DNA of 64,000 nt. It comes from Rebecca billardiae RCC1528 (lineage: Eukaryota; Protista; Haptophyta). The stretch spans positions 310,001-374,000 of the forward strand of contig OZ251245.1 of NCBI GenBank assembly GCA_965240325.2. The letters run 5' to 3'. Positions within the stretch are counted from its first letter, which is position 1. Each line of letters begins with the position of its first letter. This document shows, piece by piece, positions 11,092 through 55,955 of the stretch. Both the position numbers and the translations under genes were made by a program. The notes below the pieces were generated by a model, which was given only the letters and a program-made list of their open reading frames with translations, was not told the origin of the DNA and did not search any database.

Positions 11092-13014
11092 TCACAACCC
11101 CGACGCATCTGCGGCATCATCGGCTGCAGCGACCGCCGCCGGCAGCTGGGACTCAGCGGTCAGCTGCGGCGCTGAGCCTGAGGCCGCCGCACGCTCGCGC
11201 CAATCCCTGTGCTCGCGTGGCGTGCGGCGCGCCGACGAGCTACGCGCCGCGCCGCTGCTCCGCTCGGACCGCTGCCGCCGGAGCGTGGGCTTGAAGTGCG
11301 CGTACGATGGCTTGGGTTTCGACGGCACCGCGACGGCGTGCAGCAGCCCGTCCGGGCCGACCACCTTCTCGATGGCGCGCTCTCCGCGAAGCCGCTGCGC
11401 GAGCTGCGACGTTGGCGTGTCTCGCTCCCGCCGGGGTGCGCCGCGCGCCGCAGCGCCACCCGGCGGCACGCTGCCTGCGGCCGCCCCTGCCGGCCACGGC
11501 GGCGCACGGGGCTCGGCCCGAGCTGGCCGCCGCGCCGCCGCCCCAAGCGCCACCTCCGCGACTTGCTCCCGAAGCGCAAGCGCTGCCGCGGCCTCGTGGC
11601 GTGCGCGGCGCGCTACCACTTCCGCAGCCGCGCGTTCGCTCACCTCCCGCGCCGCCGCCGCCTGCCGCGCGGCGGCCTCGCGCTCGCGCGCCGCGGCCGC
11701 TGCGCGCGCCGCCGCGGCTGCGCGCGCCTGCGCGGCCGCGCGCTCCGCCTCGGCGCGCTCACGCGCCTCCTGTGCGGCCGCGGCCGCGGCGGCCTCCGCG
11801 GCCGCGCGCGCGCGCGCGGCCGCCGCACGCGCCTCCTCCTCCACGCGCGCGCGCGCCGCAGCCGCGCGCTCGGCCTCAGCGCGCTCGCGCGCCTGCCGCG
11901 CGGCGATGGCCGCGGCGGCCTCCGCCGCCGCGCGCGCGCGCGCCTCCGCCGCGCGCGCCTCCGCCTGTGCGCGCTCGCGCGCGCGTCGCGCGACGCGCGG
12001 CGCGATCCGCTGCGCGCCGTCATCACCGGCCAGCCAATCAGAGCGCTCGCAGCAGTTGGCGTAGCCAAAGGGCGCGAAGAGGGCGGGGTCCGCGGCGCGC
12101 ACGGCGGCGGCGAGGGTCGCGTTCGCGCCGAACGAGGCGCGGCACGCCTTGAGCCGGCGCTGCACCCGCCCCGCCCCCGCCGCGCGCGCCTCTGGCGGCG
12201 CCTGCCGCGGATGGGCGAGCAGTGCGCGCGCGCGCGCCCACGCAGCCGCCCCGAGCGGCCGGCCAGACCAGACTTCAAACTGCATGAGGCAGCGCTCGAT
12301 GTCCTCGCCGAGGGTCTCGACGAGCACCCAGCAGTCCGCGTGCGCGAGCGGCTCGAGCGCCGACGCGTTCAGCCGGCGCGCCATCCGCCCCGCCGTGCAC
12401 ACCTCCGCGCCCAGGCCGCCATCGTTGAGCCCATTGCAGTGCGTGTGGCCGTCATTTGGAAAGCAGCCGTGGTCAAGTGAGTAGGCCCAGAGGACATAGG
12501 AGGCGAAGCCGACGGGCTGGGACGGGGCTCGGCGGCCGGGCGCGCGCCGCCGCCGCGCGGCGAGCAGCCACTCGAGCAGCTCGGCCGGCACGGGCGCGTC
12601 GGAGTTCGCGCTCGGCACGGGCACGAACGAGCTGGCCGCGCCGCCGATTCGGAACGGCGTACGCGCGGGCCCGGCGGCATATGAGAGGTAGAGTGTGCAC
12701 GGGTTGCGCATGAGCGCGACGACGAAGTGGGGGCTGCGCACGCCGAGGGCATCGGGAAGCGCCGTCGTCGCGCCCACGGCCACGTACCGCTCGGGCGCCG
12801 CCTGCGAGAGCACGTGCGAGACAAAGCCGCTCGCGGCGCGCGGCGACTGCCGGAGCACGAGCAGCGCATCCGCGGCGGTCGCGCCTTTGGGGAGGGCGGG
12901 GGGCACGCGGCTGCGGTTGTTCTCGCCAACGGACGGGCACCACCGCGAGCCGAGCGCGGCTGGGACCACGATCGTCACCAGCACGAGAGATGTCCTCGCA
13001 ATACTCGAGAACAT
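11092..13014 (-). CDS. Secreted/Golgi sulfotransferase-like protein with an Ala/Glu/Arg coiled-coil C-terminus
   Basis: Signal peptide; VVALMRNPCTLYLSY resembles the 3'-PB motif (RxP...S) and RQSPRAASGF a degenerate 5'-PSB loop; long AEARA repeats. Confidence 0.5.
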   Translation of the reverse strand: MFSSIARTSLVLVTIVVPAALGSRWCPSVGENNRSRVPPALPKGATAADALLVLRQSPRAASGFVSHVLSQAAPERYVAVGATTALPDALGVRSPHFVVALMRNPCTLYLSYAAGPARTPFRIGGAASSFVPVPSANSDAPVPAELLEWLLAARRRRAPGRRAPSQPVGFASYVLWAYSLDHGCFPNDGHTHCNGLNDGGLGAEVCTAGRMARRLNASALEPLAHADCWVLVETLGEDIERCLMQFEVWSGRPLGAAAWARARALLAHPRQAPPEARAAGAGRVQRRLKACRASFGANATLAAAVRAADPALFAPFGYANCCERSDWLAGDDGAQRIAPRVARRARERAQAEARAAEARARAAAEAAAAIAARQARERAEAERAAAARARVEEEARAAAARARAAAEAAAAAAAQEARERAEAERAAAQARAAAAARAAAAAREREAAARQAAAAREVSERAAAEVVARRARHEAAAALALREQVAEVALGAAARRPARAEPRAPPWPAGAAAGSVPPGGAAARGAPRRERDTPTSQLAQRLRGERAIEKVVGPDGLLHAVAVPSKPKPSYAHFKPTLRRQRSERSSGAARSSSARRTPREHRDWRERAAASGSAPQLTAESQLPAAVAAADDAADASGL

Positions 13015-13234
13015 CTCTCACACGCCGGCCGCCATCGTGCCCACACCCACACCCGTCATCTCTCCGTCACTCTCAGTGGCCGTCACGCCGCCGCCGCGGG
13101 ATGAGGGAGATCTCGATGGATCTCCCCGGGCTTGTCGTCAGGAACCTGCGCCGCGGTGCTGCAGCAAGCTGCAAGCGCTCGCTCGGTCACCTACCTCGGG
13201 CTTCTCCCGAGCCGCGGGCTCGAGCCCTGGCGCG

Positions 13235-14797
13235 ATGGCCCCGGCGAAGCTGGCGTGCAAGGCGTGCCGGCTGAGCAAGGTCAAGTGCGACGCGGAGCAG
13301 CGCTCCGGCACCTGCTCGCGATGCGAGCGCCTCGGCCTGAACTGCGTGCCGTGCGGGCCGTGCATGCGCGGCCGGCCAAACGCCAACCGGGATCGCTCGC
13401 GTCTCGGCCCCGCGGTGAAGGCGCTGCTGATCAGCGAGGGCGGCGACGCCGCGGCGGCGAGCAGCGACGGCGAGCGCGGGGCCAGGTCGATCCGCCACCT
13501 CTTCCTCCTCGCGGGCCAGTCCAACATGGCGGGCCGCGGCCGGATGGACGACGGCGACGCGGGGAACGAGGAGTCTGAACTCGACGATGAGCACGAGTGC
13601 GAGCCGGACACGCGCATCCACGTGTTCCGCTCGGAGGCGGAGGGCTGGCAGCCCGCGCGGCACCCGCTGCACCAGGACAAGCCGGCCAAGGCCGGCATCG
13701 GCCCCGGCCTCGCCTTCGCGCGCGCCGTCGTCGACTTCCTGCCGCCGAACGAGAGCGTCGGCCTCGTCGCGTGCGCCGTCGGCGGGTCGCCGATTTCGCA
13801 GTGGGCCGCCGAGCCGGCGGAGCAGCCGGGAGAGCTGTTCCGCGCGGCGGTCGCCACGTTCGCCGTGGCGGCGAAGGCGACCGCCGACGCCGGCGCCGAC
13901 GCCGCGCTGGGCGGCGTGCTCTGGCACCAGGGCGAGTCAGACTGCGCAGCCGCCTGCCCCCGGGCAGCTGAGGGCTACGCCACACGGCTGCGGGCAGTTG
14001 TGCGCGCCCTTCCGGCGGCGTGCGGCGCGCCGTGCGCGCCGGTGATCCTCGGCGAGCTCGGGCTGGAGTTCCTCGACGCCGAGCACGACGCGCGCTTCCA
14101 CGCCGCCCGCGCCATCAACCGCGCCATCGTGCACGTCGGCAGCACCGCCGGACCGAGCGTGAGTGTTGTCTCTGCGCGCGGCCTCGGCCACGTCGGCGAC
14201 CAGCTGCACTTCTCCGCGCGCGCGGCGAACGAGCTGGGCGTGCGGTACGCGTGGCGCTGGCTCGAGCTCACCGGGCGCGTGACGCGCTCGCTGCGCACGC
14301 TCGTCACCGCCGGCGCCGGCGTCGATCGGCCGCTCTGCGATCCTGCTGCGGCGTCGCTGCCGCCGCCCGCTGGCATGGGCTTCGGCGGCGGCGGCGCGCC
14401 CGGCGCTGCGTGCAGCGACGCTCGGTGCCACGCGCCACCGGTGCCCGTGGGCGGCGGCGACGGGGCGCACGCGCCAGCTGCCGGCGCCGGCGGGTGGTGT
14501 GCCGCGGGCGCGGGCCCGGGAGCGGCGAGTGCGCCGCCGCCGCACCTCGGCGGGCCTGGGGCTGGCAGTCGCGAAGTGTGCGGCTGCGGCAGCGTCGCGC
14601 GACCAGGCTGCAGCGCGCCCGCGCTCGGCGCGAGCCCCGGCGACGGCACGATGGGCACAGCCACGGTATGGGTGGCGACTTCCGCCCACGCGGGCGAGCC
14701 GATGGAGTGCGTGGAGGCCGAGCCGCCCGAGGCAGCGGAGTGCCGGAAGCGCGCGCTGGACGCGCTCGCCGCCGCCGAGCCCGCCATCATCGATTGA
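13235..14797 (+). CDS. Zn(II)2Cys6 DNA-binding domain fused to a SASA/CE6-type SGNH carbohydrate esterase, 520 aa
   Basis: CKACRLSKVKC-X8-CSRCERLGLNC, then LAGQSNMAG, GIGPGLAFA, LWHQGESD and DQLHF in one continuous ORF. Confidence 0.85.
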   Translation: MAPAKLACKACRLSKVKCDAEQRSGTCSRCERLGLNCVPCGPCMRGRPNANRDRSRLGPAVKALLISEGGDAAAASSDGERGARSIRHLFLLAGQSNMAGRGRMDDGDAGNEESELDDEHECEPDTRIHVFRSEAEGWQPARHPLHQDKPAKAGIGPGLAFARAVVDFLPPNESVGLVACAVGGSPISQWAAEPAEQPGELFRAAVATFAVAAKATADAGADAALGGVLWHQGESDCAAACPRAAEGYATRLRAVVRALPAACGAPCAPVILGELGLEFLDAEHDARFHAARAINRAIVHVGSTAGPSVSVVSARGLGHVGDQLHFSARAANELGVRYAWRWLELTGRVTRSLRTLVTAGAGVDRPLCDPAAASLPPPAGMGFGGGGAPGAACSDARCHAPPVPVGGGDGAHAPAAGAGGWCAAGAGPGAASAPPPHLGGPGAGSREVCGCGSVARPGCSAPALGASPGDGTMGTATVWVATSAHAGEPMECVEAEPPEAAECRKRALDALAAAEPAIID

Positions 14798-15022
14798 TAC
14801 ATCAGTCATACAGTGACAGCGGTAGTGTCATAATCGTACTATGATACCTACAGTATGGGGGTAATGGGGGTACAGTACAGGCTGCTGGCTGGTCTGTGCA
14901 CGCCGCTTCCGACTTCCGAGGCAGCTGCCGGGCTCACGCCCGTGTGCTGCCGGGCGCACGCCCGCCTATCCGCACGGCGCAACACGCGGAGGGAGGTCAC
15001 CCGGAGGGGCGGACTTTGGAGG

Positions 15023-16627
15023 ATGCGCTGTGCCATCGCGCTCGTCGCGCTCGTTGCGCGCGCCTCCGCCCACCCGTCGGCAGAGGCGAGCGCTGACATC
15101 GGCATCTATCCTGGTTATGACGGCAGCGAGGCTACGCCCGCGGGCGAGGTGCTGGTGCGCAGGGTGGTGGGGACAGACGCCATCAGCATCACGGGGCGTG
15201 TCTCAGGGCTCGAGCCAGGCGTGAGCGGTGCCGGCGTGCACGTCCACGAGGGCACGAGCTGCGCGGACGCCGCCGCCGTCGGCGCTCACCTGCGGCCATC
15301 AGGCGCGGCTGAGGATCCGTGGCGCGACTCAGCATACGACACGGACGAGGCCGGTGTCGCGCAGCTCGGCCTGCTCGTGCGCGCGTTCTCCGTCGACGCT
15401 GCCGAGGCGGACACGCTGATAGGCCACGCCATTGTCTTCCACCTGCGCAGTGGCAAGCGCGCCGGCTGCGGCGTGATTGCAATCTCGGCCAACGCGAGCG
15501 GAGCGCCGCGCCCGCCCGCCGCCGTGGCTCTGCTGCCGCCCCTGGCGCCGCCGCTGGCGGCCGGGCCGCCGCCACCGCCCGCGCCAGCGGCTGCCAACCG
15601 CACCGGCAGAGCACCAGCGCCGCCGCCGCTCCCGCCGGCCGTGCCGCTCCCTCCGTACACGCCAAGAGCAGCGTACAGCTCAAGCGTGCCGCCAGGGCCG
15701 CCTTCGCCGCCAGGGCCGCCTTCGCCGCCACCAGTGCCATCGCCGCCGCCAATGGTGCATCTTCCGCCGGCGTCGACCTGGATGGGCGCGCCGCCGCCCG
15801 CCACTACCCCGGCGGCTGCGTACCCGCCTCCCACGCCGCCGTGGCCGCCGCTGCCCGACGGGCCAACCTGGCTGCCATGGCCGCCGCCGCTGCCGCCGGC
15901 GGCTCGCAGCGCTCCTCGGAGGCCGCCGTCGCCGCCATTCGCTTCGCCGCCGCCGCCGTCGCACGCGCGCGCGCCGCCAGCCAAGCGCAGAGCGCCACCG
16001 CCGGCGCCGGCGCCGGCGTCCTCGCCGCCCTCGTTGCCACGCCCGCCACCGGCGCGCAGCCCAAAGCCGCCCGCCCCACCGCCCTCTCCTGCGCCGCCGC
16101 CGCCGCCGCCCGCATCGCCCGCGCCGCCGCCGATGCCTCCGCCGCCGCCCGACTGCTTGTCCTTCCGATTGGGCACCTGCCAGCTGTGCGCCAGCGCGCG
16201 GGGGTGCGTCTGGCTCACGGAGTCCGGGATGTGCGTGCTCGGGCCGTGCAGGCTCGCGAGCGGCTGCGTGGCGATGCGGAGCGAGTGCCGGGCGCCGACG
16301 AAACTCTCGCCCTCGCCGCCGGCGTTCGGTTCACCGCCGCCGCCGCCCGCCGCTCCCGCAGTCACGCCCGCGGATCAGGGCGCGAGCAGCGCCGTGCCGC
16401 CCGAGGGCAGCAGGCGCGGCGGCGCCGCGCTCATACTCGCGCTCGTGCTCGGCGTCCCGTGTCTGGCGCTGCTCGCCTGGCGCGCCGGCTACCTCCAGCG
16501 CCGCTACTGCCCGTACTGGCCGATGCTGGGCAGTCACGGCGCCTCCGAGTTCGAGCCGATGGAGTTCGAGCTGGGCAACTTCCGCGGCGACCCGACGCAG
16601 AGCGGATACCGGTCGTACCTAGACTAG
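15023..16627 (+). CDS. Membrane-anchored Cu/Zn-SOD-fold protein (Cu-only type) with Pro-rich stalk, PSI-like Cys domain and TM helix, 534 aa
   Basis: Signal MRCAIALVAL; GVHVHEGTSC, GAH, IGHAIVFH, RAGCGVI; ~200 aa poly-Pro; CQLC...GCVW...GMC; TM ALILALVLGVPCLALLAW. Confidence 0.8.
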   Translation: MRCAIALVALVARASAHPSAEASADIGIYPGYDGSEATPAGEVLVRRVVGTDAISITGRVSGLEPGVSGAGVHVHEGTSCADAAAVGAHLRPSGAAEDPWRDSAYDTDEAGVAQLGLLVRAFSVDAAEADTLIGHAIVFHLRSGKRAGCGVIAISANASGAPRPPAAVALLPPLAPPLAAGPPPPPAPAAANRTGRAPAPPPLPPAVPLPPYTPRAAYSSSVPPGPPSPPGPPSPPPVPSPPPMVHLPPASTWMGAPPPATTPAAAYPPPTPPWPPLPDGPTWLPWPPPLPPAARSAPRRPPSPPFASPPPPSHARAPPAKRRAPPPAPAPASSPPSLPRPPPARSPKPPAPPPSPAPPPPPPASPAPPPMPPPPPDCLSFRLGTCQLCASARGCVWLTESGMCVLGPCRLASGCVAMRSECRAPTKLSPSPPAFGSPPPPPAAPAVTPADQGASSAVPPEGSRRGGAALILALVLGVPCLALLAWRAGYLQRRYCPYWPMLGSHGASEFEPMEFELGNFRGDPTQSGYRSYLD

Positions 16628-17062
16628 CAGGAGCAGCCTGCTGGCGGACGCCGTCTGCGTCCGCGCGGGCCGCAACACTAACAATCAGTAAGATAGTATG
16701 GCGCGGGCCGTACCGAGGCGGGGGCGTCGGCCGTCACGACCGCGTACGGGCGCGTACCGGAGCCGCGCCCGCGCTGAGCCTAAGTGCGCCGCGCCGCCCG
16801 CCTTCGATATGATCGATGCGCTATGATGATGGCTACTTCCGATCCGTGAATGAGAATCTGAGACTGAATCGAGTTCGATCTGCCCGTAGTCACTCTGCCA
16901 CTCCGGGCTGGCCGAGCCGCCCCGTTATTGCCCGCGCGTTCTGCGGGCGGCGTTGTCGGTTGCGTACATCAGGACCTCGCGGCGGGCTTACTAGCTGCGA
17001 AGTGCGATGACTACTGCTGATATAAGTGCTATACTTATTAATATATATGTGACTCTTCTCTC

Positions 17063-17063
<1 letters not shown>

Positions 17064-17116
<53 letters not shown>
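17064..17116. repeat. (CT)n microsatellite
   Basis: Directly visible. Confidence 0.95.
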
Positions 17117-17118
<2 letters not shown>

Positions 17119-17765
17119 TAATTATAAATATGATAAGTGCGAGACCCGCGACGAACATCGGCACTTGCAGCTTTGAGCTTATATATACTTTGCTGCTCGG
17201 GTCGTAATTGCCCGCACTAGTCGGCCCGTAGTGGACCCTAACGTGAGTGGCGGCGGCTGACGTGTCAGCCTGCGTCGGGTCAGCCCATATATGTTACGAT
17301 CGGCAGCTTCAGAGTTAGACTTTCCCGGTGGTAAGTATATATAGTATCCATCACATCATAGTTAATAGTAATACGGCTGTGCCAGTGATATAGCCAGGAC
17401 CCCTTGTGCGCTGTCGCGCGCCAGACCCACCAAACCGTTGAGACCGAACCAACTGCGCGGCAGTAGTTCAATTCGTCACTCACTCGGACAGTCTCACTGC
17501 TCTGCTGATCAGACTCTGTGCGCTGTACAATACTGAATACTCAATATACTCTAATGTACAGTTGTGGCACTCTCAAACGACCAGGATGCGATCACAGCTC
17601 CAGTTCTTCAGGACCAACCAAGACCAAGACCAAGTTGGAGCCCGCCTACTCCGACGGAATCTGTCTCATCGCTACACACCACTGGGGCGGCCAGACACGA
17701 CGAAGTCACGAAGCCGCCCGCCGTGGGCAGCGGCACGTCGTTGGGGCGGCCCACGAGCACCCGCG

Positions 17766-20700
17766 ATGGCGAAGAAGAGTGGCGGTGGCGAGGGCGGCGG
17801 CAAGACTCGGCGCGGTGGGCAGGGCCGGCGCGGCGGCACCATCGCCAAGCGGCGCGCGGCGGTCGCGGCCTCGGAGAACATCACGCGCGAGATCGCAGCG
17901 AACATGGCTGGCGGCGCGGGCGGCGGGAAGGGCGGCGGCGGCGGTCAGAACCGGCGCGGCGGGCAGGGCCGGCGCGGCGGGAAGGGCGGCGGCGGCGGTG
18001 GCGGCGGCGGGAGCCAGGGCGCCTCCGTCGCGCAGCTGCACAAGGCCATCCGGCGAGAAGTGAACAAGGACAACGTGCCGGGGGCCCTGGTCGCTTACTC
18101 GCAGCTGCGCGACGCGCGCGCGCGGATGGACGGGCAGACGGTGCACATGCTCGCGATGCTGCTGATCAGCCACGGGCACCTGCGCCCGGCGCTCGAGCTG
18201 CTCCGCGAGGTCGCGCCCTACCGCCCGCTCACGCCCAGCCAGCTGCCCGAGGCACTGAGCAACCTGCCACAGACGATTGACTCGGCCGCCGCGGCGGCCG
18301 TCGTCGACGCGCTCGTCGGCGCGACCGCGTTCGCCGACGGCGACGCCGCGGCGGAGTTCTTCCGCGCGCGGGCGCGCTGGGTCGTGATGGAGTTCGCCGA
18401 CGAGGCGCGCTCCGCGCTCGACGCGATCGCGCACAGCGACCCGTGGGTGCTCGCACGCCAGGGTAGGTGCGTGCTGGGCTGCGCGCTCAGCGCCGGTGGC
18501 AACTCGGGCGAGCTGCTGGCGACGGGCGGCATGGACGCGGGCTCCGACGTGCGCCGGCCGCTCTCGATCGGGGACACCGTCTCGCTCCGCCTCGCGCGCC
18601 CGCCCGCGCCAGCCGCCGCCCCGACGGCGGCCGCCCCAGCCGACGAGTACGGCGAGGGCGCGCTGCCGTCTGCGCGCTCCGCCCTGTCTCTGCTTGAGGG
18701 CAGTTGGATCGAGGCGGAGGTGGTGAGCGCGCGGCCGCTGGTGCTCAAGCCGGTGATCAGCACGATCGCGTCGAGCGTCGCCGGCCTCGTCGGCGCGCCG
18801 CGCGACGCCGAGCAGGGGGCCGCCTCCGCGCCGCCGCTGCCGCCGCCCGACGGCTGCGGCGGCGGCGGCGCCGGGCTCACGCCGGGCGCAGGGAGTGGAC
18901 CTCCGACGCTGCGTGCGCTCTGGTCCGGGGCCGCCGAGCCGCCCGGCGGCGGCTCGGGCGTGTTCGGCCCCGAGCCACGCGCCGCCGACGCCGCGTGCGC
19001 GCCGCGCGTCGTGCGCGCGCCCTCCAAGAACAGCGCTCTCGGCGGCGGGAGCTCGGCCGCGCCCGCCTCCGCCGCGGCGGGCCGTGAGTTTCGTGTCGAC
19101 AAGTTGGCGAATCGAATCACGCTGGAGCGGACGGTGCGCGCGCTGGCGGCGGTGGTGGGCGGCAGCGCGGGCGCGGGGCTGCCCGCGGGCTCCCCGGCCG
19201 CGCCGATCGTCGCCGCGCTGCTCGGCGTCGACGTCGGCGATGCGAGCATCCTCAGCCGCGCGCCGACCGACCGTCCGCTCGTCTGGCCGGCCACTGACCC
19301 GAGCCCGGCGCCGCCGGCCGGCGCGCGGTTGGTGCGCGAGGCGTGCGCGCTGCCGCGCGATGCGGGCATGGCGGCCGACGCGGCGCAGCCGGGCGGCGGC
19401 CTCGGCGCGGCGGGCGGGAGCCTCGCCGAGCGCTTCGGGCTCGCGGCGGCGGCGGCGGCGCCGGGCGGCGGCCAGCGCCCGGCGGCGGCCGCTAGCGCTG
19501 ACTGGCGCATGCCCGGTGCGGCGGCCGCCGCCGCGCCTGGATCCGTCGGCTTCGTCGAGCGCTTCTTGGGCGGGCTGAACCAGTCGCAGGCCGACGCGGT
19601 GCGCGCGGCGTTCGAGCGCCGCCTCACGCTCATCCAGGGCCCGCCGGGCACGGGCAAGACGCGCGTCGCCGTGCGCGTACTGCTTGCTCGCGTGCGCGCG
19701 GGCGATCGCTGCCTCGCGGCATCCGACTCGAATATTGCCGTCGACAACCTGCTCAGCGGGCTGGTGGCGCTCGGGCTGCGCGCGGTGCGCGTCGGCCGGC
19801 CCGAGTCGACGCGGCCCGACCTGCTCCCGTACTGCGCCGACGAGATCGGCCTGCGCGCCGGCGGCCGGCGCAGCGAGCAGCTGCAGGCGCGGATGCGCGC
19901 CGTGCAGCGCGCGGAGGTGGTCTGTGCGACGTGTGTGGGCGCGGGCGCGCCCGTCCTCGATCGGCAGCAGTTCCACACGGTGCTGGTGGACGAGGCGTGC
20001 CAGGCGACCGACGCGGCGACGATCGTGCCGCTCACGCGCGGGTGCCAGTCCCTCGTCCTCGTGGGCGACCAGTGCCAGCTCCCGCCAACCGTCACCTCGG
20101 AGGACGCGAAGGCGGGCGGCGCGGCGGTGTCCTTATTTGAACGGCTGCTGCTCGCGGGCGTAGCTCCGCACATGCTGCGCACGCAGTACCGCATGCACCC
20201 GGCCATCGCCGCGTTCCCGTCGGACTGCTTCTACCAGGGCGCGGTGGACTCCGGCGTGCGCGCCGCCGAGCGCCCCGCGCCGCCGGGCTTCAGCTGGCCG
20301 CGCGCCGAGACCCCCGTCGCCTTCCTCCACACGCTCGGCGCGGGCGGCGAGTCGTCCGAAGGCGTGAGCAAGCTTAATCAGGCGGAGGCGGAGGTGGTGG
20401 CCCACCTCGTGCACAGCGTGCTGTACGCGGGCGGGCTGCGCGCGGCGGAGGTGGGCGTGATCTCGCCGTACGCGGCGCAGTGCACGCTGCTCAAGCGCGC
20501 GCTCTCCCGCTCGCTCGGCCGCGAGCACGGCCGCGCGGTCGAGGTCGCGTCCGTCGACGGCTTCCAGGGCCGCGAGAAGGAACTGATGGTTGTCTCAACC
20601 GTGCGCGCCAACGCGCGCGGCAGTGTCGGCTTCCTTGCGGACTGGCGGCGGGCGAACGTGGCGCTCACGCGCGCGAAGCGCGGGCTGATCGTCGTCGGCG

Positions 20701-21068
20701 ACGCGCAGACGCTGCTCCGCGAGCACCGCGCGTGGGCGCCGTTCCTCCACTGGTGCTCACACCACGGCGTCCTGGTGGGCCATGCGCCGCTGCCGGGCGG
20801 ATATGACCCAGCCGCGACGCGCGCGCTCGGCGCCGGGACGCCCGTCGCGATGCTGCCCGCCGCGCCGCCGCCGGGCGCGGCGGGCGGCGTTGGCGCTGCC
20901 GAGGCGGGGCGCAGGCCGAGGGACGAGGGCGACGACGACGACGACGACGAGGGCGCGGAGCGCGCCAAGCGGCGGCGCAGCCGGTGGCAGGACGTGGACA
21001 GCGCGGCCGCGTCGACCGCGCCGCGCGCGCGCACAGAATTTGAAGACCTGTGGGCGCCGCCGCGCTAG
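17766..21068 (+). CDS. UPF1/DNA2-NAM7-like superfamily 1 helicase
   Basis: LNQSQ, QGPPGTGKT, SNIAVD, DEACQA, GDQCQLPP, QYRMHP, ISPY, VDGFQGREK, RRANVALTRAK; Gly/Arg-rich N-terminus; no UPF1 CH zinc domain seen. Confidence 0.92.
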   Translation: MAKKSGGGEGGGKTRRGGQGRRGGTIAKRRAAVAASENITREIAANMAGGAGGGKGGGGGQNRRGGQGRRGGKGGGGGGGGGSQGASVAQLHKAIRREVNKDNVPGALVAYSQLRDARARMDGQTVHMLAMLLISHGHLRPALELLREVAPYRPLTPSQLPEALSNLPQTIDSAAAAAVVDALVGATAFADGDAAAEFFRARARWVVMEFADEARSALDAIAHSDPWVLARQGRCVLGCALSAGGNSGELLATGGMDAGSDVRRPLSIGDTVSLRLARPPAPAAAPTAAAPADEYGEGALPSARSALSLLEGSWIEAEVVSARPLVLKPVISTIASSVAGLVGAPRDAEQGAASAPPLPPPDGCGGGGAGLTPGAGSGPPTLRALWSGAAEPPGGGSGVFGPEPRAADAACAPRVVRAPSKNSALGGGSSAAPASAAAGREFRVDKLANRITLERTVRALAAVVGGSAGAGLPAGSPAAPIVAALLGVDVGDASILSRAPTDRPLVWPATDPSPAPPAGARLVREACALPRDAGMAADAAQPGGGLGAAGGSLAERFGLAAAAAAPGGGQRPAAAASADWRMPGAAAAAAPGSVGFVERFLGGLNQSQADAVRAAFERRLTLIQGPPGTGKTRVAVRVLLARVRAGDRCLAASDSNIAVDNLLSGLVALGLRAVRVGRPESTRPDLLPYCADEIGLRAGGRRSEQLQARMRAVQRAEVVCATCVGAGAPVLDRQQFHTVLVDEACQATDAATIVPLTRGCQSLVLVGDQCQLPPTVTSEDAKAGGAAVSLFERLLLAGVAPHMLRTQYRMHPAIAAFPSDCFYQGAVDSGVRAAERPAPPGFSWPRAETPVAFLHTLGAGGESSEGVSKLNQAEAEVVAHLVHSVLYAGGLRAAEVGVISPYAAQCTLLKRALSRSLGREHGRAVEVASVDGFQGREKELMVVSTVRANARGSVGFLADWRRANVALTRAKRGLIVVGDAQTLLREHRAWAPFLHWCSHHGVLVGHAPLPGGYDPAATRALGAGTPVAMLPAAPPPGAAGGVGAAEAGRRPRDEGDDDDDDEGAERAKRRRSRWQDVDSAAASTAPRARTEFEDLWAPPR

Positions 21069-22031
21069 CCGCGCCCGCGCTCCGAAGGCTGAGGGCTGGC
21101 TGGCTGAGCGCGGACGACGGCGGTTGCGAATGAAGGCGGATTGAGTCGGGCGAGCCCTGGCCGTTGCCGCCGTGCGACGCCGACCCGCGACCGGCCCGGT
21201 GCGAGTCCCGCGGTTCTAATTTATATTAATTAAAAGTATATCTATATCATATACTGCTAGTATTATAACTACTGCTAATCATTTAAATCAACATCAGCAT
21301 CATCACTAATAACAGTAACGACACCGTCGATCATCATCCGAACTTCTCTATACTCTGTCTCTAGTCTAACACTCGCCGCGGGCCCGTGGCGCGGCCACTA
21401 CAATCCGGGCGCGGGCCGCGGCGCGGGCCGCCGGGCCCCGGCCCGGGGCCGCGGCCGCGCCGCCGGCGGCCGCGCCCGCGGGCGCGGCGTGGCCGTGCCC
21501 GTGGCCGCGTATATGGGCCGCGTGGGGCTAGAGCGTGGGGCGTCCACGGCCACGGGCCGCGTGGCGCGTCGCGGTCGGCGGGCCGTTCTGCGCGGACCGT
21601 GATCGACTGCTACAGAGCTGCCGGCCGGCTGCGCGGCGTGATCCGCGTCCGCCCGCGGACGGCGTCACCGGGACGCGCAGCGCGCTTATCGACTGCCGCG
21701 CCCGACGCGCTGGCCGCGAGGGTCAGCGATGATAAGGATTTTGCGCGGCGTTTTGGCGCGCTAGCCCCTCAGACTCACTAGACTCAGGGCCACCACTCCT
21801 GTCACTGTCACTTGTCACTTCGTCAGTCCATGCCCTTGAATCTTACTAGTTACTGGCAATACTGCCGCCATCGTGCGGGATTGCCCGATTTCGTCAGCGA
21901 ACATGACTTGATCGCCGAGCGATCCCACCGTCCTTGCTTTGGAGTGCTGCTACTGGCCAGCCGCCAACTGCGGAGCGGGCGACGGAGCTGCCGGCCCTCG
22001 CACGCCGAGGCCGCTCGGACGGCCGCTGGCC

Positions 22032-23504
22032 ATGACGCCGTCGTCAGTGGTCACCTCCGCCGCGGTGGTCATGCTCTCCACCGCCATGTTCGGCTGGACC
22101 AATGGCAACATGAACACGCCCGCGCCCGCCATGCGGATTGCGTTTGGCATCCCGCCGGACGAGGCGGCACCATGGCGCGAGGTGATCTGGGGCTGGTGCG
22201 TGTCGGTGTACTGCCTGGGCGCGCTGTTCGGCTGCTTCTTCAGCCCCCGCCTCGCCGACCGGCTCGGCCGAAAGCGCTTCATCCTGCTCAACACGGTCAT
22301 CTTCATCGTCGGCGCGCTCGTCCAGGGCCTGGCCTTTGTCGGCGGCACCGCCGGCATCGTGCTCACGATGGTGGGCCGGCTGATCGTCGGCTGCGCGTCG
22401 GGCGGGACGACGGTGGTCGTGCCCGCGTACATGGGCGAGATCGCGCCGGACAACATCCGCGGCGCCCTCGGCGTCGCCTTCCAGCTCGTCGTCACCATCT
22501 CGATGCTGCTCGCGCAGCTGGCCGGCATGCCGCATAACCTGGGCACCGAGTCCGGGTGGCCGCTGGTGATGGCGCTGGCGGGCGCGCCCGGGCTGGTGCA
22601 GCTCGTGCTGCTCTCGTCGATCGTCGAGTCCCCGCGCTGGCTCGTCTACGTCGGGCGCACGCACGAGGCCGAGCTCGCGAGCGCGCGGCTGAGTGGCACC
22701 GCGCCGCGGGCTCACTACGCAGAGCTCTCCGATGCGGCGGCTGCTGCCGCGGCGGCGAGGGGTTCGGCGGAGGTCAAGAGCGACGGCGCGTCCGGGCAGC
22801 CCGCCGAGGCGCAGGGCGGCGGGCTCCGCGCCCTGCTCGCCGACGCGCGCGTGCGCCCGACGCTGATCCTCGCCACCATCACGCTGATGACGCAGCAGCT
22901 CTCCGGCATCAATAACGCGTTCAATTATTCGACAATCTTTCTCGCGGAGAATGGTGTCAGCCCTGAGGCGATCGACCGCGTGACGGTGTGGATGAACGTG
23001 GTGAACGTGCTGATGACCCTCGCCGCGACGCAGCTCGTCGACCGCTCCGGCCGGCGCGTGCTGCTGCTCAGCTCCACCTTCGGGATGGCCCTCTGCACGA
23101 TCGTCATCACACTGGGCATGCGCAACATTGCCGACGAGTGGGGTGTCACCCTCGCCTCCATCGGAATCGTCACGTTCGTCGCGTCCTTCGGGATCGGCAC
23201 GGGCCCGATCCCGTGGCTCCTCCCCGCCGAGCTCTTCTCGCAGGAGCACCGCGCGAGCGCGCAGGGCATCTCCGCGCTCGCCAACTGGGCGACCAACGGC
23301 GTGGTGGCGACCGCCTTCCTCCCGCTCGCGGACGTTCTCGGAAGCTTCTCGTTCCTTCCGTTTGGGGCGATCCTCGCGCTCTTCACGGGGTACGCATATG
23401 TGGCACTGCCGGAGACGAAGGGCGCCCAGCTCGGCGCGGCGGAGGAGGGCGCGCACGCCGACGACGAGAACGGCGGCGTCGAGTTCGTCGACGCGCACAC
23501 GTGA
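22032..23504 (+). CDS. MFS sugar porter (GLUT/SLC2-like hexose transporter)
   Basis: About 12 TM segments; DRLGRK, EIAP..IRG, ESPRWL, QQLSGINN, DRSGRR, GPIPW, PETKG. Confidence 0.95.
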   Translation: MTPSSVVTSAAVVMLSTAMFGWTNGNMNTPAPAMRIAFGIPPDEAAPWREVIWGWCVSVYCLGALFGCFFSPRLADRLGRKRFILLNTVIFIVGALVQGLAFVGGTAGIVLTMVGRLIVGCASGGTTVVVPAYMGEIAPDNIRGALGVAFQLVVTISMLLAQLAGMPHNLGTESGWPLVMALAGAPGLVQLVLLSSIVESPRWLVYVGRTHEAELASARLSGTAPRAHYAELSDAAAAAAAARGSAEVKSDGASGQPAEAQGGGLRALLADARVRPTLILATITLMTQQLSGINNAFNYSTIFLAENGVSPEAIDRVTVWMNVVNVLMTLAATQLVDRSGRRVLLLSSTFGMALCTIVITLGMRNIADEWGVTLASIGIVTFVASFGIGTGPIPWLLPAELFSQEHRASAQGISALANWATNGVVATAFLPLADVLGSFSFLPFGAILALFTGYAYVALPETKGAQLGAAEEGAHADDENGGVEFVDAHT

Positions 23505-29062: not shown

Positions 29063-31800
29063 ATGCGGCTTGCGCTGCTCATCGTGCTCGGCGCGGCCGC
29101 GAGCCGCGCCGAGGAGGCCTCGACCGACGGCCCGATCGAGAAGCGTGGCTCGAACGACAGGCACTTCAAACCCGGCGTCGTTGAGGTCGATGCGATCACG
29201 CACGACCGGCGCGGCGGCTGCAATCCAAACCTCGACCTTCACGCGCACTCGCTGGGGCACGAGGGCTCGGGCTTTGCGACCGCGAACACGTGGACGCCGC
29301 CGCCGCCCTTTTACGCGTGCCCGCCCCCTCCGCCCGCGCCACACATGGACAACTTCCGTGCCGGCTTCGATCCGCCATCGCCGCCGTCGCCGCCGTCGCC
29401 GCCGTCGCCGCCGCGCTCTCCGCCGGGCACGTTTGCGTGCGGCGTGCCCGACCCCGAGACTGCGGCGTACCAGCGCACGGGCGTGGCGCCCGAGTCGGAG
29501 GGGCACGAGACCGTCTGCTTCCTCTCGGCGAAGGCGCTCGAGCACGGCTACAGCTGCCCCGGCCGCGCTCGCATCGAGTGCATTCTGGACATTCCCGCGC
29601 CGGCGGGCGCCGAGTATATCCTGGGTAAGTACAACGTGCTTGCGGGCGTGAAGGACACGTGCATCAGCGAGGACCGCGCGTTCCGCTGCTGGGGCTCGAA
29701 CGAGGGCGCCAAGATCGGGCTCCCGGGCGTGCGCACCGTCACCGGCGGCCGCTACCCCAACTTCGACCTGAACGACACGCCGATCCTCGAGGTGGAGAAC
29801 GAGGTAGTCGAGCTTGGCCTCGGCGCGATCTTCACGTGCCTGCTGATGAAGGAGGGCAAGTTCACGTGCTTCGGCGGCGACATCGCCTCGGACGGCGCGT
29901 TCTTCTACAACCGCATGAAGAAGACCCGCTACGGCGCGCGCCGCAAGGTCGACAACCTCCACGACCGGATCACCTACTTTGTTGATGGAGACGTGCGCGC
30001 GGCGCCGCCGCCCTAACCCTAACCCCAACCCCAAACCTGACCCTGACCCTGTGCTCCGGCCGCGTGGCGTGCGGCGCGCGCGCGCGGCGGATCCGTCGCG
30101 CGCGGGCGTGCGTGCGCCCGAGCGGCGGCGGGTGGCGGTGGGCGCTCGGGCGCGCGCGCTCACGCCGGCCTTGATCCCCTCCCTCTCTCCGCGCGCGTGC
30201 ACTCTCTCGCGCACCCGCCGCGCGGCCGGAGCGCAGGACGTGAAGACGATCGACGTGGGCTTCGAGCACGTGTGCGCGGTGACCGCGAGCGGCAAGGTGG
30301 CGTGCGCGGGGCACAACGGCATCCCGGGGCGGCTGGGCACCGGGTACCACTCGTCCGTGTACGGCGAGCCCGAGCTGGTGCCCCTCAGCTCGAACGTGCG
30401 CGTGATGGATGTCGCGTGCGGCCGGCACCACACGTGCGTGCTCACGGACGGCGCGGCGGTCGTGTGCTGGGGCGGGAATAACTACGGCCAGCTCGGCGTG
30501 GGTGACACGATGGACCGCGACACGCCCGAGGAGCTGCAGTCGCTGAAGACGGTGCCCCTCGGCGGGCCGGCGCACCAGGTCTCTGCGGGTAAGAATTTCA
30601 ACTGCGCCATCGTCTCTCTACTCGACGAGCCGTCGACAAAGCGCGTCGTGTGCTGGGGGGCGAATACCTTCGGCCAGCTCGGGCTCGGCGACGAGCTGCA
30701 CAGGGGGAACGAGGAGGGCGAGATGGGCTCGGACAATCTGCCGTACGTGCCGTACGAGGTGTACGTGCCCACCTACGCGACGCACCCGTTCCCGCCGCTC
30801 GGCGAGCCGCGCACTATTGACCTCGGCCGCCACCACGCCTGCGTTCTCACCACGGACGACGACCTCAAGTGCGCGCACAGCCGCGCGCCGAGCGGCGGCC
30901 GGCCCTGCAGCGCGTCGGCTGCCGGCTGGAGCGGCGCGCGCTCACGCCTCGCACGCGCCCCCCGCGCGCGCGCCGAGCGCAGGTGCTGGGGCGCGAACTA
31001 CCACGGCGAGCTCGGTCTCGGCGACCGCGCGCACCGCGGGAACAGCCCGGGCGAGCTGCACGAGTACAGGGTGGTGCACGTTGGGCTGCTGCACAAGGCG
31101 TACGCGATCTCGGCGGGCGAGCAGCACACGTGCGCGCTCACGTACGAGTGGGTCGGGCGGCCGACGCCGGCGGAGGTGCCGGACGGCCCGTGCGTCAAGT
31201 GCTGGGGCGGTGCGCGCACTCGCGTCGCGCCGCGCGATCGCACGCGCTGCTGCGCCTGCGTGCCCCGCCCGCCGCCCCGCCGCGCGCGGCGCGTGAGCGT
31301 GGCGTGTGCCTGTCTAGCAGAGCGGAGCCCCCCGCCACTCCGCTGCGTTGTGGTCCGTGCCCCCGCCCACGGGAGGATGCGCGTGCGTGCACTCGCTCAT
31401 GCACGGATCCCCCGTGCCTCGGCCGCGCGCGTGCGCCCCCGCGCGCGCGCCCCTCGTCAACCGTGGTGCGGCAGACAACTCTGAGCACAACCTGGGCTAC
31501 GGCGACGACAACGACCGGCTGAACCGCTTCTACGGCGAGGACGGGTGCATCAACTCGGTGAACCGCGTGCTCGACCCGCACTCGGAGGAGAACCTCGCCA
31601 TCGCGTGGCACAACGCGCAGAAGGCGGACGGTCTGCAACAGGAGGGCGGCGCGGCGGCGCTGGCGGCCAGCCGCGCGCTGCGCCGCGGGGGCGCGGCGCT
31701 CGGTCTCGCGGCGCTGGCGGTGGCGCTCGCGCTGGCGGCGCGCAGGCGCGCGCCCGCACAGTGCGAGGCCTCGACAGCCGATCACGCCGGCATGCTGTGA
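29063..31800 (+). CDS. Secreted/surface RCC1-BLIP-II repeat beta-propeller protein; 4 exons (29063-29992, 30237-30868, 30983-31209, 31475-31800), 704 aa
   Basis: Signal peptide; repeated HTC/HVC...CWG.N..GQLG.G; three GT-AG introns restore the repeats; hydrophobic C-terminus. Confidence 0.8.
30011..30051 (+). repeat. Intronic telomere-like (CCCTAA)n, degenerate
   Basis: ccctaaccctaaccccaaccccaaacctgaccctgaccctg inside intron 29993-30236. Confidence 0.85.
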
Positions 31801-37176: not shown

Positions 37177-38223
37177 CTATTGCGCGTTGGCCTTGGGCAT
37201 CAGCGCGATGCCACGCTCCTCCAGCAGATGCGCGCTCATCGCCCAGACGCGCGCGCCGAGCGACTCGAGCGCCGGGCCGGGCTGAGCCCAAGGGTGCTCG
37301 GGCGTGTGCACTCGGACGCCCGCCTCGGCACGCGCCGGGACCACATACTGGCCGTGCACCGCGCTGCGCTCGACATCGTCTGCGAGGGCACACCACAGCT
37401 GCGGCAGGCTCCCGCGCTGCACGTCGAGCCCGACGAAGAGCCGGCGCACGCGCACAAACGCGCCCACGAGCAGCGCGAGCAGCGGGTGCAGCCCCTTGTA
37501 GGTCTCCCTGAGGATGCCCGTCGCGACGATGCCCGGGTGCACACTGTTGGAGTGGAGCGCGCGGCCGCAGATGGCGGGCAGGGCGCCCGCGCGCGCGCGC
37601 CGGTCGAGCTCGGTGGCGAAGGCGAGCTGCGCGAGCTTGGCGATGCCGTAGCGGCCCATCAGGTCTGCGCTCGTGCGCATGTGCTCGCTCGATGCGAGCC
37701 ACGCGGCCGCCGTCGCCGGCTCGAGCCAGCCAGCATCCAGCGGCGCGCGCCGGTTCGCCCGAGAGCTCACGTGCACGATGCGCGCGGCGCGGCGTGCGGG
37801 CTGCTGGCCGGCGCCACGGCCGATCGCCGGGAGCAGCGCGAGCGTGAGCGCAAAGTGCGCCAGGTGGTTCACCACGAACGTCTCCTCGAGATCGCCCGGC
37901 CACACGAGCGACGGCCGGCCGCCGCGGAAGACGGTCGAGACGCCGCCGTTGTTCACGAGGATGTCCAGCACGTCGAAGCGGCGTTCGAACTCGTCGACGA
38001 AGCTCCGCACCGTCCGCAGGTCCGCGAGATCCAAGTGGATGACCGTCGCCGACGCGAGCTGTGCCGCGACTGCCTCGCCTTTCGCGAGGTCACGGCACGC
38101 GAGCACGACATGCGCGCCGCGCCGATCGAGCTGCTTGGCCGTCTCAAGCCCCAGGCCGGACGTCGGCCCCGTGACGACCGCCACGCACCCGTGAAGGTCG
38201 GCGTCTTCCAACCAGGACGGCAT
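37177..38223 (-). CDS. Short-chain dehydrogenase/reductase (retinol dehydrogenase/WWOX-like)
   Basis: VTGPTSGLG, DLADL, LVNNGG, VNHLAHF, YGIAK, VHPG. Confidence 0.92.
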   Translation of the reverse strand: MPSWLEDADLHGCVAVVTGPTSGLGLETAKQLDRRGAHVVLACRDLAKGEAVAAQLASATVIHLDLADLRTVRSFVDEFERRFDVLDILVNNGGVSTVFRGGRPSLVWPGDLEETFVVNHLAHFALTLALLPAIGRGAGQQPARRAARIVHVSSRANRRAPLDAGWLEPATAAAWLASSEHMRTSADLMGRYGIAKLAQLAFATELDRRARAGALPAICGRALHSNSVHPGIVATGILRETYKGLHPLLALLVGAFVRVRRLFVGLDVQRGSLPQLWCALADDVERSAVHGQYVVPARAEAGVRVHTPEHPWAQPGPALESLGARVWAMSAHLLEERGIALMPKANAQ

Positions 38224-38383
38224 CGAACGATCAGCGAGCGGAGCGGCCGCGAGCGTCGCGTTCGCGTCGTCCTGGTGGCCGCACTCGGCGCTCCCGGTCG
38301 CGAGCGATGATCTGTAGATCGGACTTGCGTCGACGCGGCGGTCCAAGTTGGCGGAAGACGTCCATCAGAGCCGCAAGATCACG

Positions 38384-39367
38384 ATGGCGTCGTGGCGCGC
38401 GACGCTCGCGTGCGTCCTCGCGGCGGTCACGTCCACGTCAGCCGCGCGGGTCGACTTCGTTGTTGCACACTGCCACGAACCAGCTGAGTGGCTCGCGGAT
38501 GCGCGCGACGGGCTGCTCGAGGGGGCGCCTGGCACGAGCATCGCGCTGCGCATCTACGAGAAGTGCGAGGATGCGCGCGCCCCGCAGTACCCCGTGGATG
38601 GCTGGGCCTCGGTGACGTACACCTACCTGCCCAACAAGGGCGAGGAGTGCCTCGCGTACCTGACGCACATCGTGGGCGCGTACAAGAACGACTCCATCGC
38701 CGATTACACCGTCTTCTTCCAGGGGGACTCCGTCGTGCAGGGGCGGTACGTTCGGGACGCGCTGAGAGAGTTTGGCTTTTCCGTGGTGTCCATCTCGGCG
38801 AAAGACGAGTGGCGCTCCCTCAACGACCACCAGTACATCGCGCAGGGCGAGAGCGACGAGGCGTGCGCCGGGAAGATCAACTGCATGTCGTCCCAAGGGC
38901 CCGACTTCGCCGAATGCCTCGGCGAGATGTGGCTGCATCTCGGCATCGGCCCGAGGCCGCCTGTGATTGCCGTCTTTGCAAACGCGCAGTTCGGCGTCTC
39001 CGCGGATCGCGTGCTCGCGCGCCCCGTCTCGTTCTACGAGGACCTGCTCGCCGAGTTCAACAGGCCCTCCGACGTCGAGTGCTTCAAGCTGTACGGCCCC
39101 AAGGGGCGGCCATACCGCGGCACCTGCGCCCTCCTCGAGTACATGTGGCCGGCCATCTTTGGTGAGGCGGCCGAGCTGGATCCGGCGCACACCATGCGGC
39201 ACGAGTACGGCACCAAGACCGTCAACAACGTGATGAAGAACTTGCGGCGTCACGCAGAGCAGGGTGCTGCGCAGGAGGCGCGCGACGGGCAGAGCGATGG
39301 CGCGCGCGAAATGTCGGTGGCGGCTGCCGGCACCGACAGCAGCGCGAGCAGCAAGGACGAACTGTGA
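38384..39367 (+). CDS. DUF3431-like secreted protein
   Basis: Signal peptide; VVAHCHE...W, IYEK, LPNKGEE..AYLTHIV, VFFQG, AQFGVS..RV..RP..FY, LEYMW..IFG. Confidence 0.8.
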   Translation: MASWRATLACVLAAVTSTSAARVDFVVAHCHEPAEWLADARDGLLEGAPGTSIALRIYEKCEDARAPQYPVDGWASVTYTYLPNKGEECLAYLTHIVGAYKNDSIADYTVFFQGDSVVQGRYVRDALREFGFSVVSISAKDEWRSLNDHQYIAQGESDEACAGKINCMSSQGPDFAECLGEMWLHLGIGPRPPVIAVFANAQFGVSADRVLARPVSFYEDLLAEFNRPSDVECFKLYGPKGRPYRGTCALLEYMWPAIFGEAAELDPAHTMRHEYGTKTVNNVMKNLRRHAEQGAAQEARDGQSDGAREMSVAAAGTDSSASSKDEL

Positions 39368-54664: not shown

Positions 54665-55120
54665 GTCGTGCGGCAGCGCTCGCGGCCGCTCCTCGCGAGC
54701 ACGCGACAAGCACGCGGTGCATCACGCGCCATCCACATCCCCGCCGTGGCTCGTCTCCCCGCGGGGCGACTTGGCCACGGCCTGGATGGGGAGGGCGGTG
54801 CGCCCGCGAACTCAAGAACCCATCAAGATTCCGCCTGCCATTCTGATCACCTAATAAACTATGAATACTCTCGACCTCGACCGGTACTCCGTATACTGTC
54901 GTCATTTGCCACGTCCTGAAGAGTGAAGAGTGAAGACTGAAGTTGAAAGTTCAGACTGTTGATCGACGCAGGCTTGTCCAGTGTCCACGTGCGCGTCTCC
55001 GGACGCAGGCTGCCGCTCGACCAATCAGAGCGCGCCAACGTCAGGAGCTTGGACGCCTGAATCGGACGCCCGTGGCGGATCTTCTCGCCGGCCCCGCAGA
55101 TCCTTCTCACGCCGGTCACG

Positions 55121-55955
55121 ATGGGCGTGCACGCGCAGGTGCCCGGGATGCGCTCGATGGAGGCGGTTCGCACCGTGTGGCGGACGGCCGCCGCGGTCTG
55201 CTTCGACGTCGACTCGACCATCGTGAGCGAGGAGGGCATCGACGTGCTCGCGGCGCACTGCGGCGCGGGCGAGGCGGTGGCCGAGTGGACAGCGAGAGCA
55301 ATGGGCGGCGGCATCCCCTTCGAGGTGGCGCTCGAGGAGCGCCTGAAGCTGATCCAGCCCTCGCGCGCCGCTGTCGAGGCGTGCATCAACGCGCATCCGC
55401 TGCCGCTCACGCCCGGTGTCGCCGAGCTCGTGAACGCACTCCGGAAATCGGGCAAGCGCGTCTTCCTGGTCTCAGGCGGCTTCCGGCAGATGATTGTGCC
55501 TGTGGCGAAGGCGCTGGAGATACCGATGGAGGACGTGTTCGCGAACGACCTCCTCTTCGACGAGGGTGCGCGCGCGCGCGCGCGGCGCGCGCGCCACCCG
55601 AGCCTCATGGCACTTCTCTCACCGGGCGTTCGGGTCGCCGCGCACGCCCACGCCGCCGCGCCGCGCGACAGACGGTCAGTTCGCTGGCTTCAACCGCGAT
55701 GAGCCGACGTCGCGATCGGGCGGGAAGGCGGTCGTGATCGAGCGCCTCAAGACCGAGCGCAAGGTGCCCTCGGTCGTCATGGTCGGCGACGGCGCGACCG
55801 ACGCCGAGGCGTGCCCGCCCGCCGACGCGTTCATTGGGTTCGGAGGTGTCCAAGTTCGGGAATCGGTCAAGGCTCTCGCGCCGTGGTACGCCACGTCGAT
55901 GGCGGAGCTGCACGACGAGCTGAAGCGCGAGCCGCTGCAGCAGCCCGCGGCCTGA
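55121..55955 (+). CDS. PSPH: Phosphoserine phosphatase (HAD family); 2 exons (55121-55565, 55672-55955), 242 aa
   Basis: FDVDST, EEGID, T..AMGG, VSGGF, SRSGGK, GDGATD, FIGFGG. Confidence 0.93.

Follow-up and report, generated by a model that had tools for sequence, protein, structure and literature searches.

An algal Zn2Cys6 module joined in frame to a SASA/CE6 esterase domain in the haptophyte Rebecca billardiae

The contig OZ251245.1 of Rebecca billardiae RCC1528 (GCA_965240325.2) was analysed over a stretch of 64,000 nucleotides (nt), from position 310,001 to 374,000 of the forward strand, which we call the window and number from its first letter. A coding sequence at 13235..14797 on the plus strand, taken as a single exon on the basis of the open reading frame (ORF) list, the gene call P0001 and the periodicity of the GC content at third codon positions (GC3), encodes a protein of 520 residues plus stop, with an N-terminal Zn2Cys6 cluster followed by a carbohydrate esterase domain. 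This is a genuine chimeric gene, apparently lineage-specific, in which the 5' end of an algal Zn2Cys6 gene is joined in frame to a stand-alone SASA/CE6 gene.

The N-terminal part is an extended Zn2Cys6 DNA-binding module (residues 1-66, 13235..13432, plus strand), delimited by identity to the algal protein P0121, by the family alignment and by its profile score, and composed of the cluster, a basic RGR linker and an RLGPAVKALL helix. The binuclear cluster proper (Cys8 to Cys37, 13256..13345, plus strand) has six cysteines, C8, C11, C18, C27, C30 and C37, the 2-6-8-2-6 spacing of which satisfies the definition of the PF00172 motif, CX2CX6CX5-16CX2CX6-8C (PMC4827209). Pfam analysis placed Zn_clus (PF00172) at residues 7-38 with an E-value of 7.5e-6 and 26.4 bits, compared to a gathering score of 21, and a search of solved structures matched the DNA-binding domain of yeast PPR1 (1PYI) at an E-value of 9e-5. 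The AlphaFold2 model, built from an 80-row alignment, gives the cluster a predicted local distance difference test (pLDDT) score of 81-88. Together with the homology to P0121, these matches lie far outside chance and bear out the GAL4-type N-terminal cluster of six cysteines and the basic linker after it that had been read from the letters in the first-pass annotation. Neither Fungal_trans nor Fungal_trans_2, the middle homology regions, was found by Pfam at E-values up to 1, where only Zn_clus and SASA were returned. From these features of the sequence, the Zn cluster is predicted to bind DNA.

P0121 is a 464-residue MMETSP transcript product, labelled "complete", that was found by a search limited to residues 1-85. 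When 1.84 billion proteins were searched, the N-terminal 72 residues matched it at an E-value of 3.7e-21, with 69% identity over residues 1-72 and the same starting methionine (MPPAKLACKGC... versus MAPAKLACKAC...). Past residue 72 the two proteins are unrelated, and the N-terminal homology stops exactly at the end of the module that is conserved throughout the family. All ten near-invariant family residues are retained, and an alignment with 35 family members revealed three departures from commonly conserved positions, L20A, S43C and K44M.

The family itself (P0121 and P0131-P0231, collected as matches to a junction query) shares a unit of ~65 residues that reads C.ACRLSKVKC, eight residues, C.RC.RLGL.C and then ..SKRGR....RD.aRLGPAVRALL, after which its sequences diverge, as seen among 104 matches. 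Its members, which come from marine eukaryote data, form about 100 sequence clusters, with Pavlova sp. CCMP459 as the source of one. P0121, P0131 and P0133 share a conserved C-terminal region of 400 residues, and a Pfam scan of 104 proteins (P0001, the module relatives and P0203) found only the Zn_clus and SASA families. Zn2Cys6 domains had been said to pair usually with a fungal regulatory domain, a statement that needs correcting here, as the module's algal family shows no Pfam domain but Zn_clus. Judged by sequence, it looks like a large family of algal transcription factors with uncharacterised C-terminal regions. Zn-clus is an established class of transcription factors in haptophytes, three of which have 8-27 "Fungal TRF / Zn-clus" factors (PMC4827209), and the Pavlova sp. 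CCMP459 member fits these published factors.

The second part of the protein is a SASA/CE6 esterase domain of the SGNH type (residues 88-341, 13496..14257, plus strand), assigned by Pfam to SASA (PF03629) with an E-value of 3.2e-49 and 168 bits. Searches of solved structures matched Arabidopsis At4g34215 (2APJ) at an E-value of 2.3e-19 and Clostridium CAC0529 (1ZMB) at 9.5e-16. All blocks that define the active site are present. Block I, GQSNM (residues 94-98, 13514..13528, plus strand), provides the nucleophile Ser96 and Gln95 of the oxyanion hole; it is invariant in an alignment of 13 sequences and aligns to both 2APJ and 1ZMB. Block II is GGS (G183, G184 and S185), invariant among the closest relatives. 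Block III, HQGESD (residues 231-236, 13925..13942, plus strand), includes the SASA-specific HQGE, with H231, Q232, G233, E234 and D236 invariant, and Block V, DQLH (residues 322-325, 14198..14209, plus strand), supplies Asp322 and His325 of the triad, is likewise invariant and aligns to DNLH of 2APJ. SASA enzymes are distinguished from other SGNH hydrolases by a glutamine beside the serine nucleophile and by the HQGE motif (PMC9487903), and the blocks found here agree with these hallmarks. The intact catalytic motifs reported earlier were thus all recovered, with GGS in addition, and from them the esterase domain is predicted to be catalytically competent. After Block I lies an acidic insertion (about residues 103-124, 13541..13606, plus strand), roughly half Asp/Glu and absent from the alignment of stand-alone relatives, which falls at the place where At4g34215 has a lengthened loop that lies between Gly38 and Asp51 (PMC9487903).

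A word search with the whole protein returned no protein but itself with both domains. Next came SASA-only proteins of 287-342 residues with 45-52% identity, which belong to Symbiodinium, Durusdinium, Gymnodinium, Apocalathium and marine eukaryote contigs. A maximum-likelihood tree nested the esterase domain in a clade (16 members, support 100/98) of stand-alone eukaryotic enzymes, as sister (94/85) to P0011, P0013, P0014 and P0015. The contigs of P0013, P0014 and P0015 come from marine samples and have 71-74% GC. Where 300-760 nt of upstream DNA is available in the relatives' contigs (L008 has only 34 nt), other ORFs occupy it. Since the esterase nests in the stand-alone clade and its relatives lack an upstream Zn module, the stand-alone form is ancestral and the fusion derived and lineage-specific.

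The ORF at 13235-14797 (plus strand) sits within a longer frame, 12695-14797, that has no stop codon. GC content is 61-78% throughout the window. In DNA of 74% GC, where nearly all reading frames around the ORF are open, a long stop-free frame is weak evidence alone; coding status is better supported by GC3 from 13235 through the junction, together with homology on both sides. GC3 is about 0.62-0.65 in 13055-13234, a segment of the 220-nt non-periodic spacer that separates the gene from a divergent one with its ATG at 13014 on the minus strand. At 13235 it steps up abruptly, to 0.88-0.97, and over module, linker and esterase it remains at 0.90-1.00 as far as about 14314, unbroken across the junction. 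The single uninterrupted ORF of the first-pass annotation is confirmed by this continuous signal and by the homology on both sides. Its lack of a signal peptide agrees with our inspection, by which the Zn cluster itself forms the N-terminus and the stand-alone relatives begin with short, non-conserved segments.

As for the start codon, Met1 (ATG at 13235) has G at both -3 (thus a purine there) and +4, compared to T at -3 and C at +4 for Met44 (13364), the sole internal in-frame ATG before the esterase; read in this way, the context of Met1 appears the better one. Two out-of-frame ATGs lie upstream, at 13101 and 13116; the ATG at 13235 falls within the frame that they open, and they would matter only if the transcript begins that far upstream. 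The same gene call, P0001, was obtained on two Logan contigs that are 100% identical over 4-5 kb to the window at 11936-17086, so that contigs from two sequencing runs carry the identical Zn/SASA junction; they may share a project with the assembly and are thus perhaps not independent of it.

Between the two domains lies a junction linker (residues 67-87, 13433..13495, plus strand) with no homology to either parent family, predicted to be partly disordered and with a GC3 of 0.93-1.00. A tblastn search of P0121 against the window showed homology to 13447, and SASA homology starts from about 13496. Downstream of the esterase domain, a clade-specific extension (14258..14317, plus strand; W.L..G....SLR.L) is common to the stand-alone algal enzymes in the alignment and includes a modelled helix at residues 351-361. 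It is followed by a Gly/Ala/Pro-rich low-complexity tail (about residues 362-493, 14318..14713, plus strand), about 130 residues longer than in the stand-alone relatives, with weak codon periodicity and a pLDDT of about 30, for which coding is less certain. In approximately 14315-14614 all three codon positions have a GC content of 0.8-0.9, as would be expected of such a Gly/Ala/Pro-rich stretch. A scan of 14290-14720 for in-frame GT/GC..AG introns gave no convincing candidate, and no other frame was more periodic. The protein ends with a C-terminal helix (14714..14797, plus strand; helix 498-513, pLDDT about 80) and a terminal ...AIID and stop, where GC3 is back at 0.90-0.97. Because periodicity returns over the last 60 codons, a helix is modelled there and the ending resembles the ...V-L-D of most relatives, we regard 14795-14797 as the true stop and count the tail as coding sequence.

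The fusion protein (14783-14794) and the stand-alone esterases P0004, P0005, P0008, P0009, P0010 and P0012 end similarly, in ...[AV][VI][LI]D-COOH, preceded in both by a conserved SLR.L.G..L.PPLL stretch. This shared ending could be a targeting or interaction motif.

In the AlphaFold2 model, pLDDT exceeds 90 over most of residues 160-350, the esterase core, and is 61-74 in the helices after the cluster (residues 50-64). It falls below 50 in linker residues 67-76, in residues 96-118 around the acidic insertion and in most of the tail. Foldseek matched the model to 2APJ with a template modelling (TM) score of 0.80 (by target) and to 1ZMB with 0.70, as well as to NanS and mammalian SIAE esterases; the modelled fold is accordingly of the SGNH flavodoxin-like kind. 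The picture offered by the model is that of two folded domains on a flexible tether.

To define how unusual the architecture is, residues 1-130 were used as a junction query in an exhaustive HMMER search of 1.84 billion representatives, in which a protein with a Zn module plus the beginning of a SASA domain would be expected to rank highest. It gave 104 matches at E-values up to 0.001. Among these, Pfam found Zn_clus in 96 and SASA in two, and no second protein with both Zn_clus and SASA was found in the 1.84 billion representatives. The other SASA match, P0203, was rejected as a further fusion, because it is a tandem SASA protein of plant type and has no Zn cluster. In the Atlas, searched by features and by shape, SASA was partnered only by GH95, Polysacc_deac_1 and Esterase, and never by Zn_clus. 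The status of a singleton holds within the reach of these searches, which a very different Zn cluster with a distant SASA domain could have escaped. According to a review, most SASA proteins have no appended domain, and only glycoside hydrolase domains are named as appended (PMC9487903). Both domains, the idea of enzyme-regulators and Zn-clus factors in haptophytes are known already; as far as sequence and literature searches reach, the Zn_clus+SASA architecture is new, with neither a second example nor a description found. The earlier impression that the fusion belongs to no described family is in line with this result.

The origin of the two halves was followed further in the window and in the protein library. 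Splicing of the Zn exon to a P0121-type C-terminus was ruled out, as tblastn of P0121 in the window finds only residues 1-72, at 13235-13447; similarity to the P0121-type C-terminal region was found neither in the protein beyond residue 72 nor anywhere in the window. No P0121-type parent gene of the same organism was traceable by searches with residues 1-85, in the 1.84-billion library or with full-length P0121, and the P0121-type proteins that were traced (P0121, P0131, P0132 and P0134) come from other samples. At the junction, a search for a repeat or transposon signature gave only short GC-rich chance matches.

The genes that flank the fusion gene are unrelated to it. The divergent upstream neighbour (11092-13014, minus strand) is an ORF of 640 residues with a hydrophobic, signal-peptide-like N-terminus, no Pfam match and a long Ala/Glu/Arg repeat region of the AAEARARAAAEAAAA type, within which both Logan contigs end at 11936. 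The downstream neighbour (14855-16627, plus strand) has a weak Cu/Zn superoxide-dismutase-like domain (Sod_Cu, 31 bits), then a proline-rich stretch of great length, a segment that contains Cys and, near the C-terminus, a hydrophobic stretch, in addition to a probable signal peptide that starts at an internal methionine. At 3-7 kb downstream are an ORF for an Upf1-like superfamily 1 helicase (17442-21065, plus strand; AAA_11/AAA_12) and a complete ORF for a sugar transporter (21912-23501, plus strand; Sugar_tr, 315 bits). Still farther on, the window has ORFs for a protein with RCC1 repeats (29919-31481), for a short-chain dehydrogenase (37180-38364, minus strand), for DUF3431 (38318-39364) and for a HAD hydrolase (55061-55699). 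The one public sequencing run returned for the locus, X1, has two pieces on it that say nothing on expression, a weak one of 36 nt and a 188-nt contig at 14718-14905, which matches with full identity the AT-richer spacer that separates the fusion gene from its downstream neighbour. That sample thus seems to contain this organism, or one very closely related to it, at low abundance.

Compared to its relatives on either side, the fusion protein keeps one half and exchanges the other. The stand-alone algal esterases ("Probable carbohydrate esterase At4g34215"-like) and At4g34215 (2APJ) are 45-52% identical to it over residues 88-360; the stand-alone enzymes have the same GQSN, GGS, HQGE and DxxH blocks, the same post-domain extension and the acidic ...[VI][LI]D ending, and no signal peptide is evident in them by inspection. 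They differ in being about 290-340 residues long and in having no Zn cluster, whereas the fusion protein adds the 66-residue module, the acidic loop insertion and a tail ~130 residues longer. With P0121, P0131 and P0133 it shares the same module, the same starting methionine, 65-71% identity and the near-invariant residues, but their conserved 400-residue C-terminal region is replaced by the enzyme. Like the Gal4/Ppr1 regulators, it has an N-terminal CX2CX6CX8CX2CX6C cluster and, after it, a linker and a short helix; unlike them, it has no Fungal_trans middle homology region or clear coiled coil, and its partner is a hydrolase.

A third comparison is with trigger enzymes, bifunctional enzyme-regulators such as PutA and BirA. 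These have a DNA-binding domain and a small-molecule catalytic domain on one chain, an arrangement that the protein predicted from the ORF would share. The examples are prokaryotic, use helix-turn-helix or ribbon-helix-helix domains and have a demonstrated regulatory function, whereas the present one is a eukaryotic ORF that combines Zn2Cys6 with an SGNH esterase. The reports on RbkR (PMC5397151) and BzdR (PMC3602430) propose the recruitment of a DNA-binding domain by an enzyme as the evolutionary route.

We propose, with a probability of about 0.5, that the product is an enzyme that binds DNA, with the esterase in place of the usual regulatory region and acting as a sensor or effector. As the sequence shows, the transferred piece begins at the start codon and extends over the whole conserved 65-residue module (cluster, basic SKRGR-type linker and RLGPAVRALL helix), and the esterase occupies the place of the 400-residue regulatory region in P0121, P0131 and P0133, the closest relatives of the module. 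The protein would be translated from Met1, enter the nucleus and bind DNA via the module. The esterase domain would function as the ligand-sensing or effector part, in the style of a trigger enzyme, and an O-acetylated sugar, once bound or hydrolysed, would change the action of the protein on its target promoters. The acidic loop and the Gly/Ala/Pro tail, both specific to the fusion, could serve activation or protein contacts. Sialic-acid (Kdn) synthesis is reported to occur widely among haptophytes and dinoflagellates (PMC6200933). O-acetylated Kdn or another sialic acid may be the ligand; O-acetyl nonulosonic acids are candidates because haptophytes and dinoflagellates, which hold the nearest esterase relatives, make these sugars. 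A stronger version, a working one-component regulator in which the SGNH esterase is the ligand sensor of a Zn2Cys6 factor and an O-acetylated sugar is read at promoters, is a tentative proposal that we regard as somewhat doubtful. It is close to the earlier suggestion of a sensor or trigger enzyme, the structural part of which stands (both domains in one frame, defining residues kept, the combination found nowhere else), with the functional part one that we continue to infer.

A number of observations weigh against a regulatory role. Two of the departures in the module, S43C and K44M, replace conserved linker residues, and the module is 65-71% identical to the P0121 group, the members of which are 74-85% identical to each other. 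The terminal branch of the esterase is rather long (0.91 versus a median of 0.53), and neither the Zn module nor the six-Cys pattern is present in any frame of the P0013, P0014 and P0015 contigs. With no second Zn_clus+SASA protein found, the singleton architecture leaves no evolutionary conservation that would argue for function. Two results stand on the side of such a role. Against profiles made without it, the module scores 94.7 bits, seventh of 36 and like bona fide members, in a test biased by the choice of members for their likeness to the fusion protein. The ratio of nonsynonymous to synonymous substitution rates (dN/dS) of the module versus the P0121 transcript is 0.30, compared to 0.22-0.48 among family members, and both tests mix constraint from before and after the fusion, which they cannot separate. 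A search of public sequencing runs for the locus returned no RNA run and a single run, X1, with 8% of the words. Only one SASA enzyme of solved structure has been functionally characterised (PMC9487903).

The main rival is a young chimera that works as an esterase only and has no regulatory role, its N-terminal module a tolerated passenger; we hold this to be a real, if minority, possibility. A duplication or rearrangement would have put the first 72 codons of a Zn2Cys6 gene before an esterase gene, and the module would not yet have decayed. The singleton architecture, the stand-alone state of the nearest esterase relatives, the slightly greater divergence of the module than among orthologues, the lost Ser-Lys of the linker and the low-complexity expansion of the tail, which suggests loose constraint, are all in its favour. 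However, the six cysteines and ten near-invariant residues are kept despite a difference of ~30% between the module and its nearest relative, and the break is not at some random point but coincides exactly with the conserved module's end. Moreover, the halves are 30-50% different from every sampled relative and the frame is still intact; unless closer relatives went unsampled, this divergence suggests that the event is not very recent.

The esterase might also be expressed alone, from a transcript that starts in or after the cluster or by initiation at Met44 (13364) with a 44-residue leader. Met44 is in frame, the leaders of the relatives are 10-45 residues long, and the frame opened by the ATGs at 13101 and 13116 overlaps the ATG at 13235. 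We nevertheless consider this unlikely, as a GC3 of 0.97 and the homology to a transcript-derived protein both start at 13235 and not at 13364, an untranslated stretch would not retain six cysteines and an open frame, and the context of Met44, as read from the letters, is weaker than that of Met1. Far less probable still is an artefact, in which two loci were mis-assembled or an intron/exon structure separates the domains into different products. The genome is very GC-rich and repeat-rich, and the Logan contigs perhaps come from the assembly's own project; but the junction is present in two run-specific assemblies at 100% identity over 4-5 kb, it shows no repeat or break, the window does not contain the rest of a P0121-type gene, and a donor/acceptor pair seen by eye (about 13280-13485, 206 nt) would shift the frame.

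Among the ligand-responsive transcription factors of fungi, the Zn2Cys6 regulators are the main ones; to our knowledge they have hardly been studied in algae. Domain shuffling is common in this group of organisms. Of more general reach among the by-products of the present analysis is the module family, with about 100 sequence clusters in which Zn_clus is the only Pfam domain recognised, and the fusion would offer a handle on the substrate of the algal stand-alone SASA esterases. Even if the module is only a passenger, the gene is a clean case of domains shuffled exactly where a DNA-binding module ends. If the fusion protein is indeed a DNA-binding enzyme with the esterase as its sensor or effector, it would be a zinc-cluster trigger enzyme without a described counterpart and would show how algal Zn2Cys6 modules gain new input domains; a regulatory region swapped for an intact enzyme would provide a model of how metabolic inputs are wired to transcription in haptophytes.

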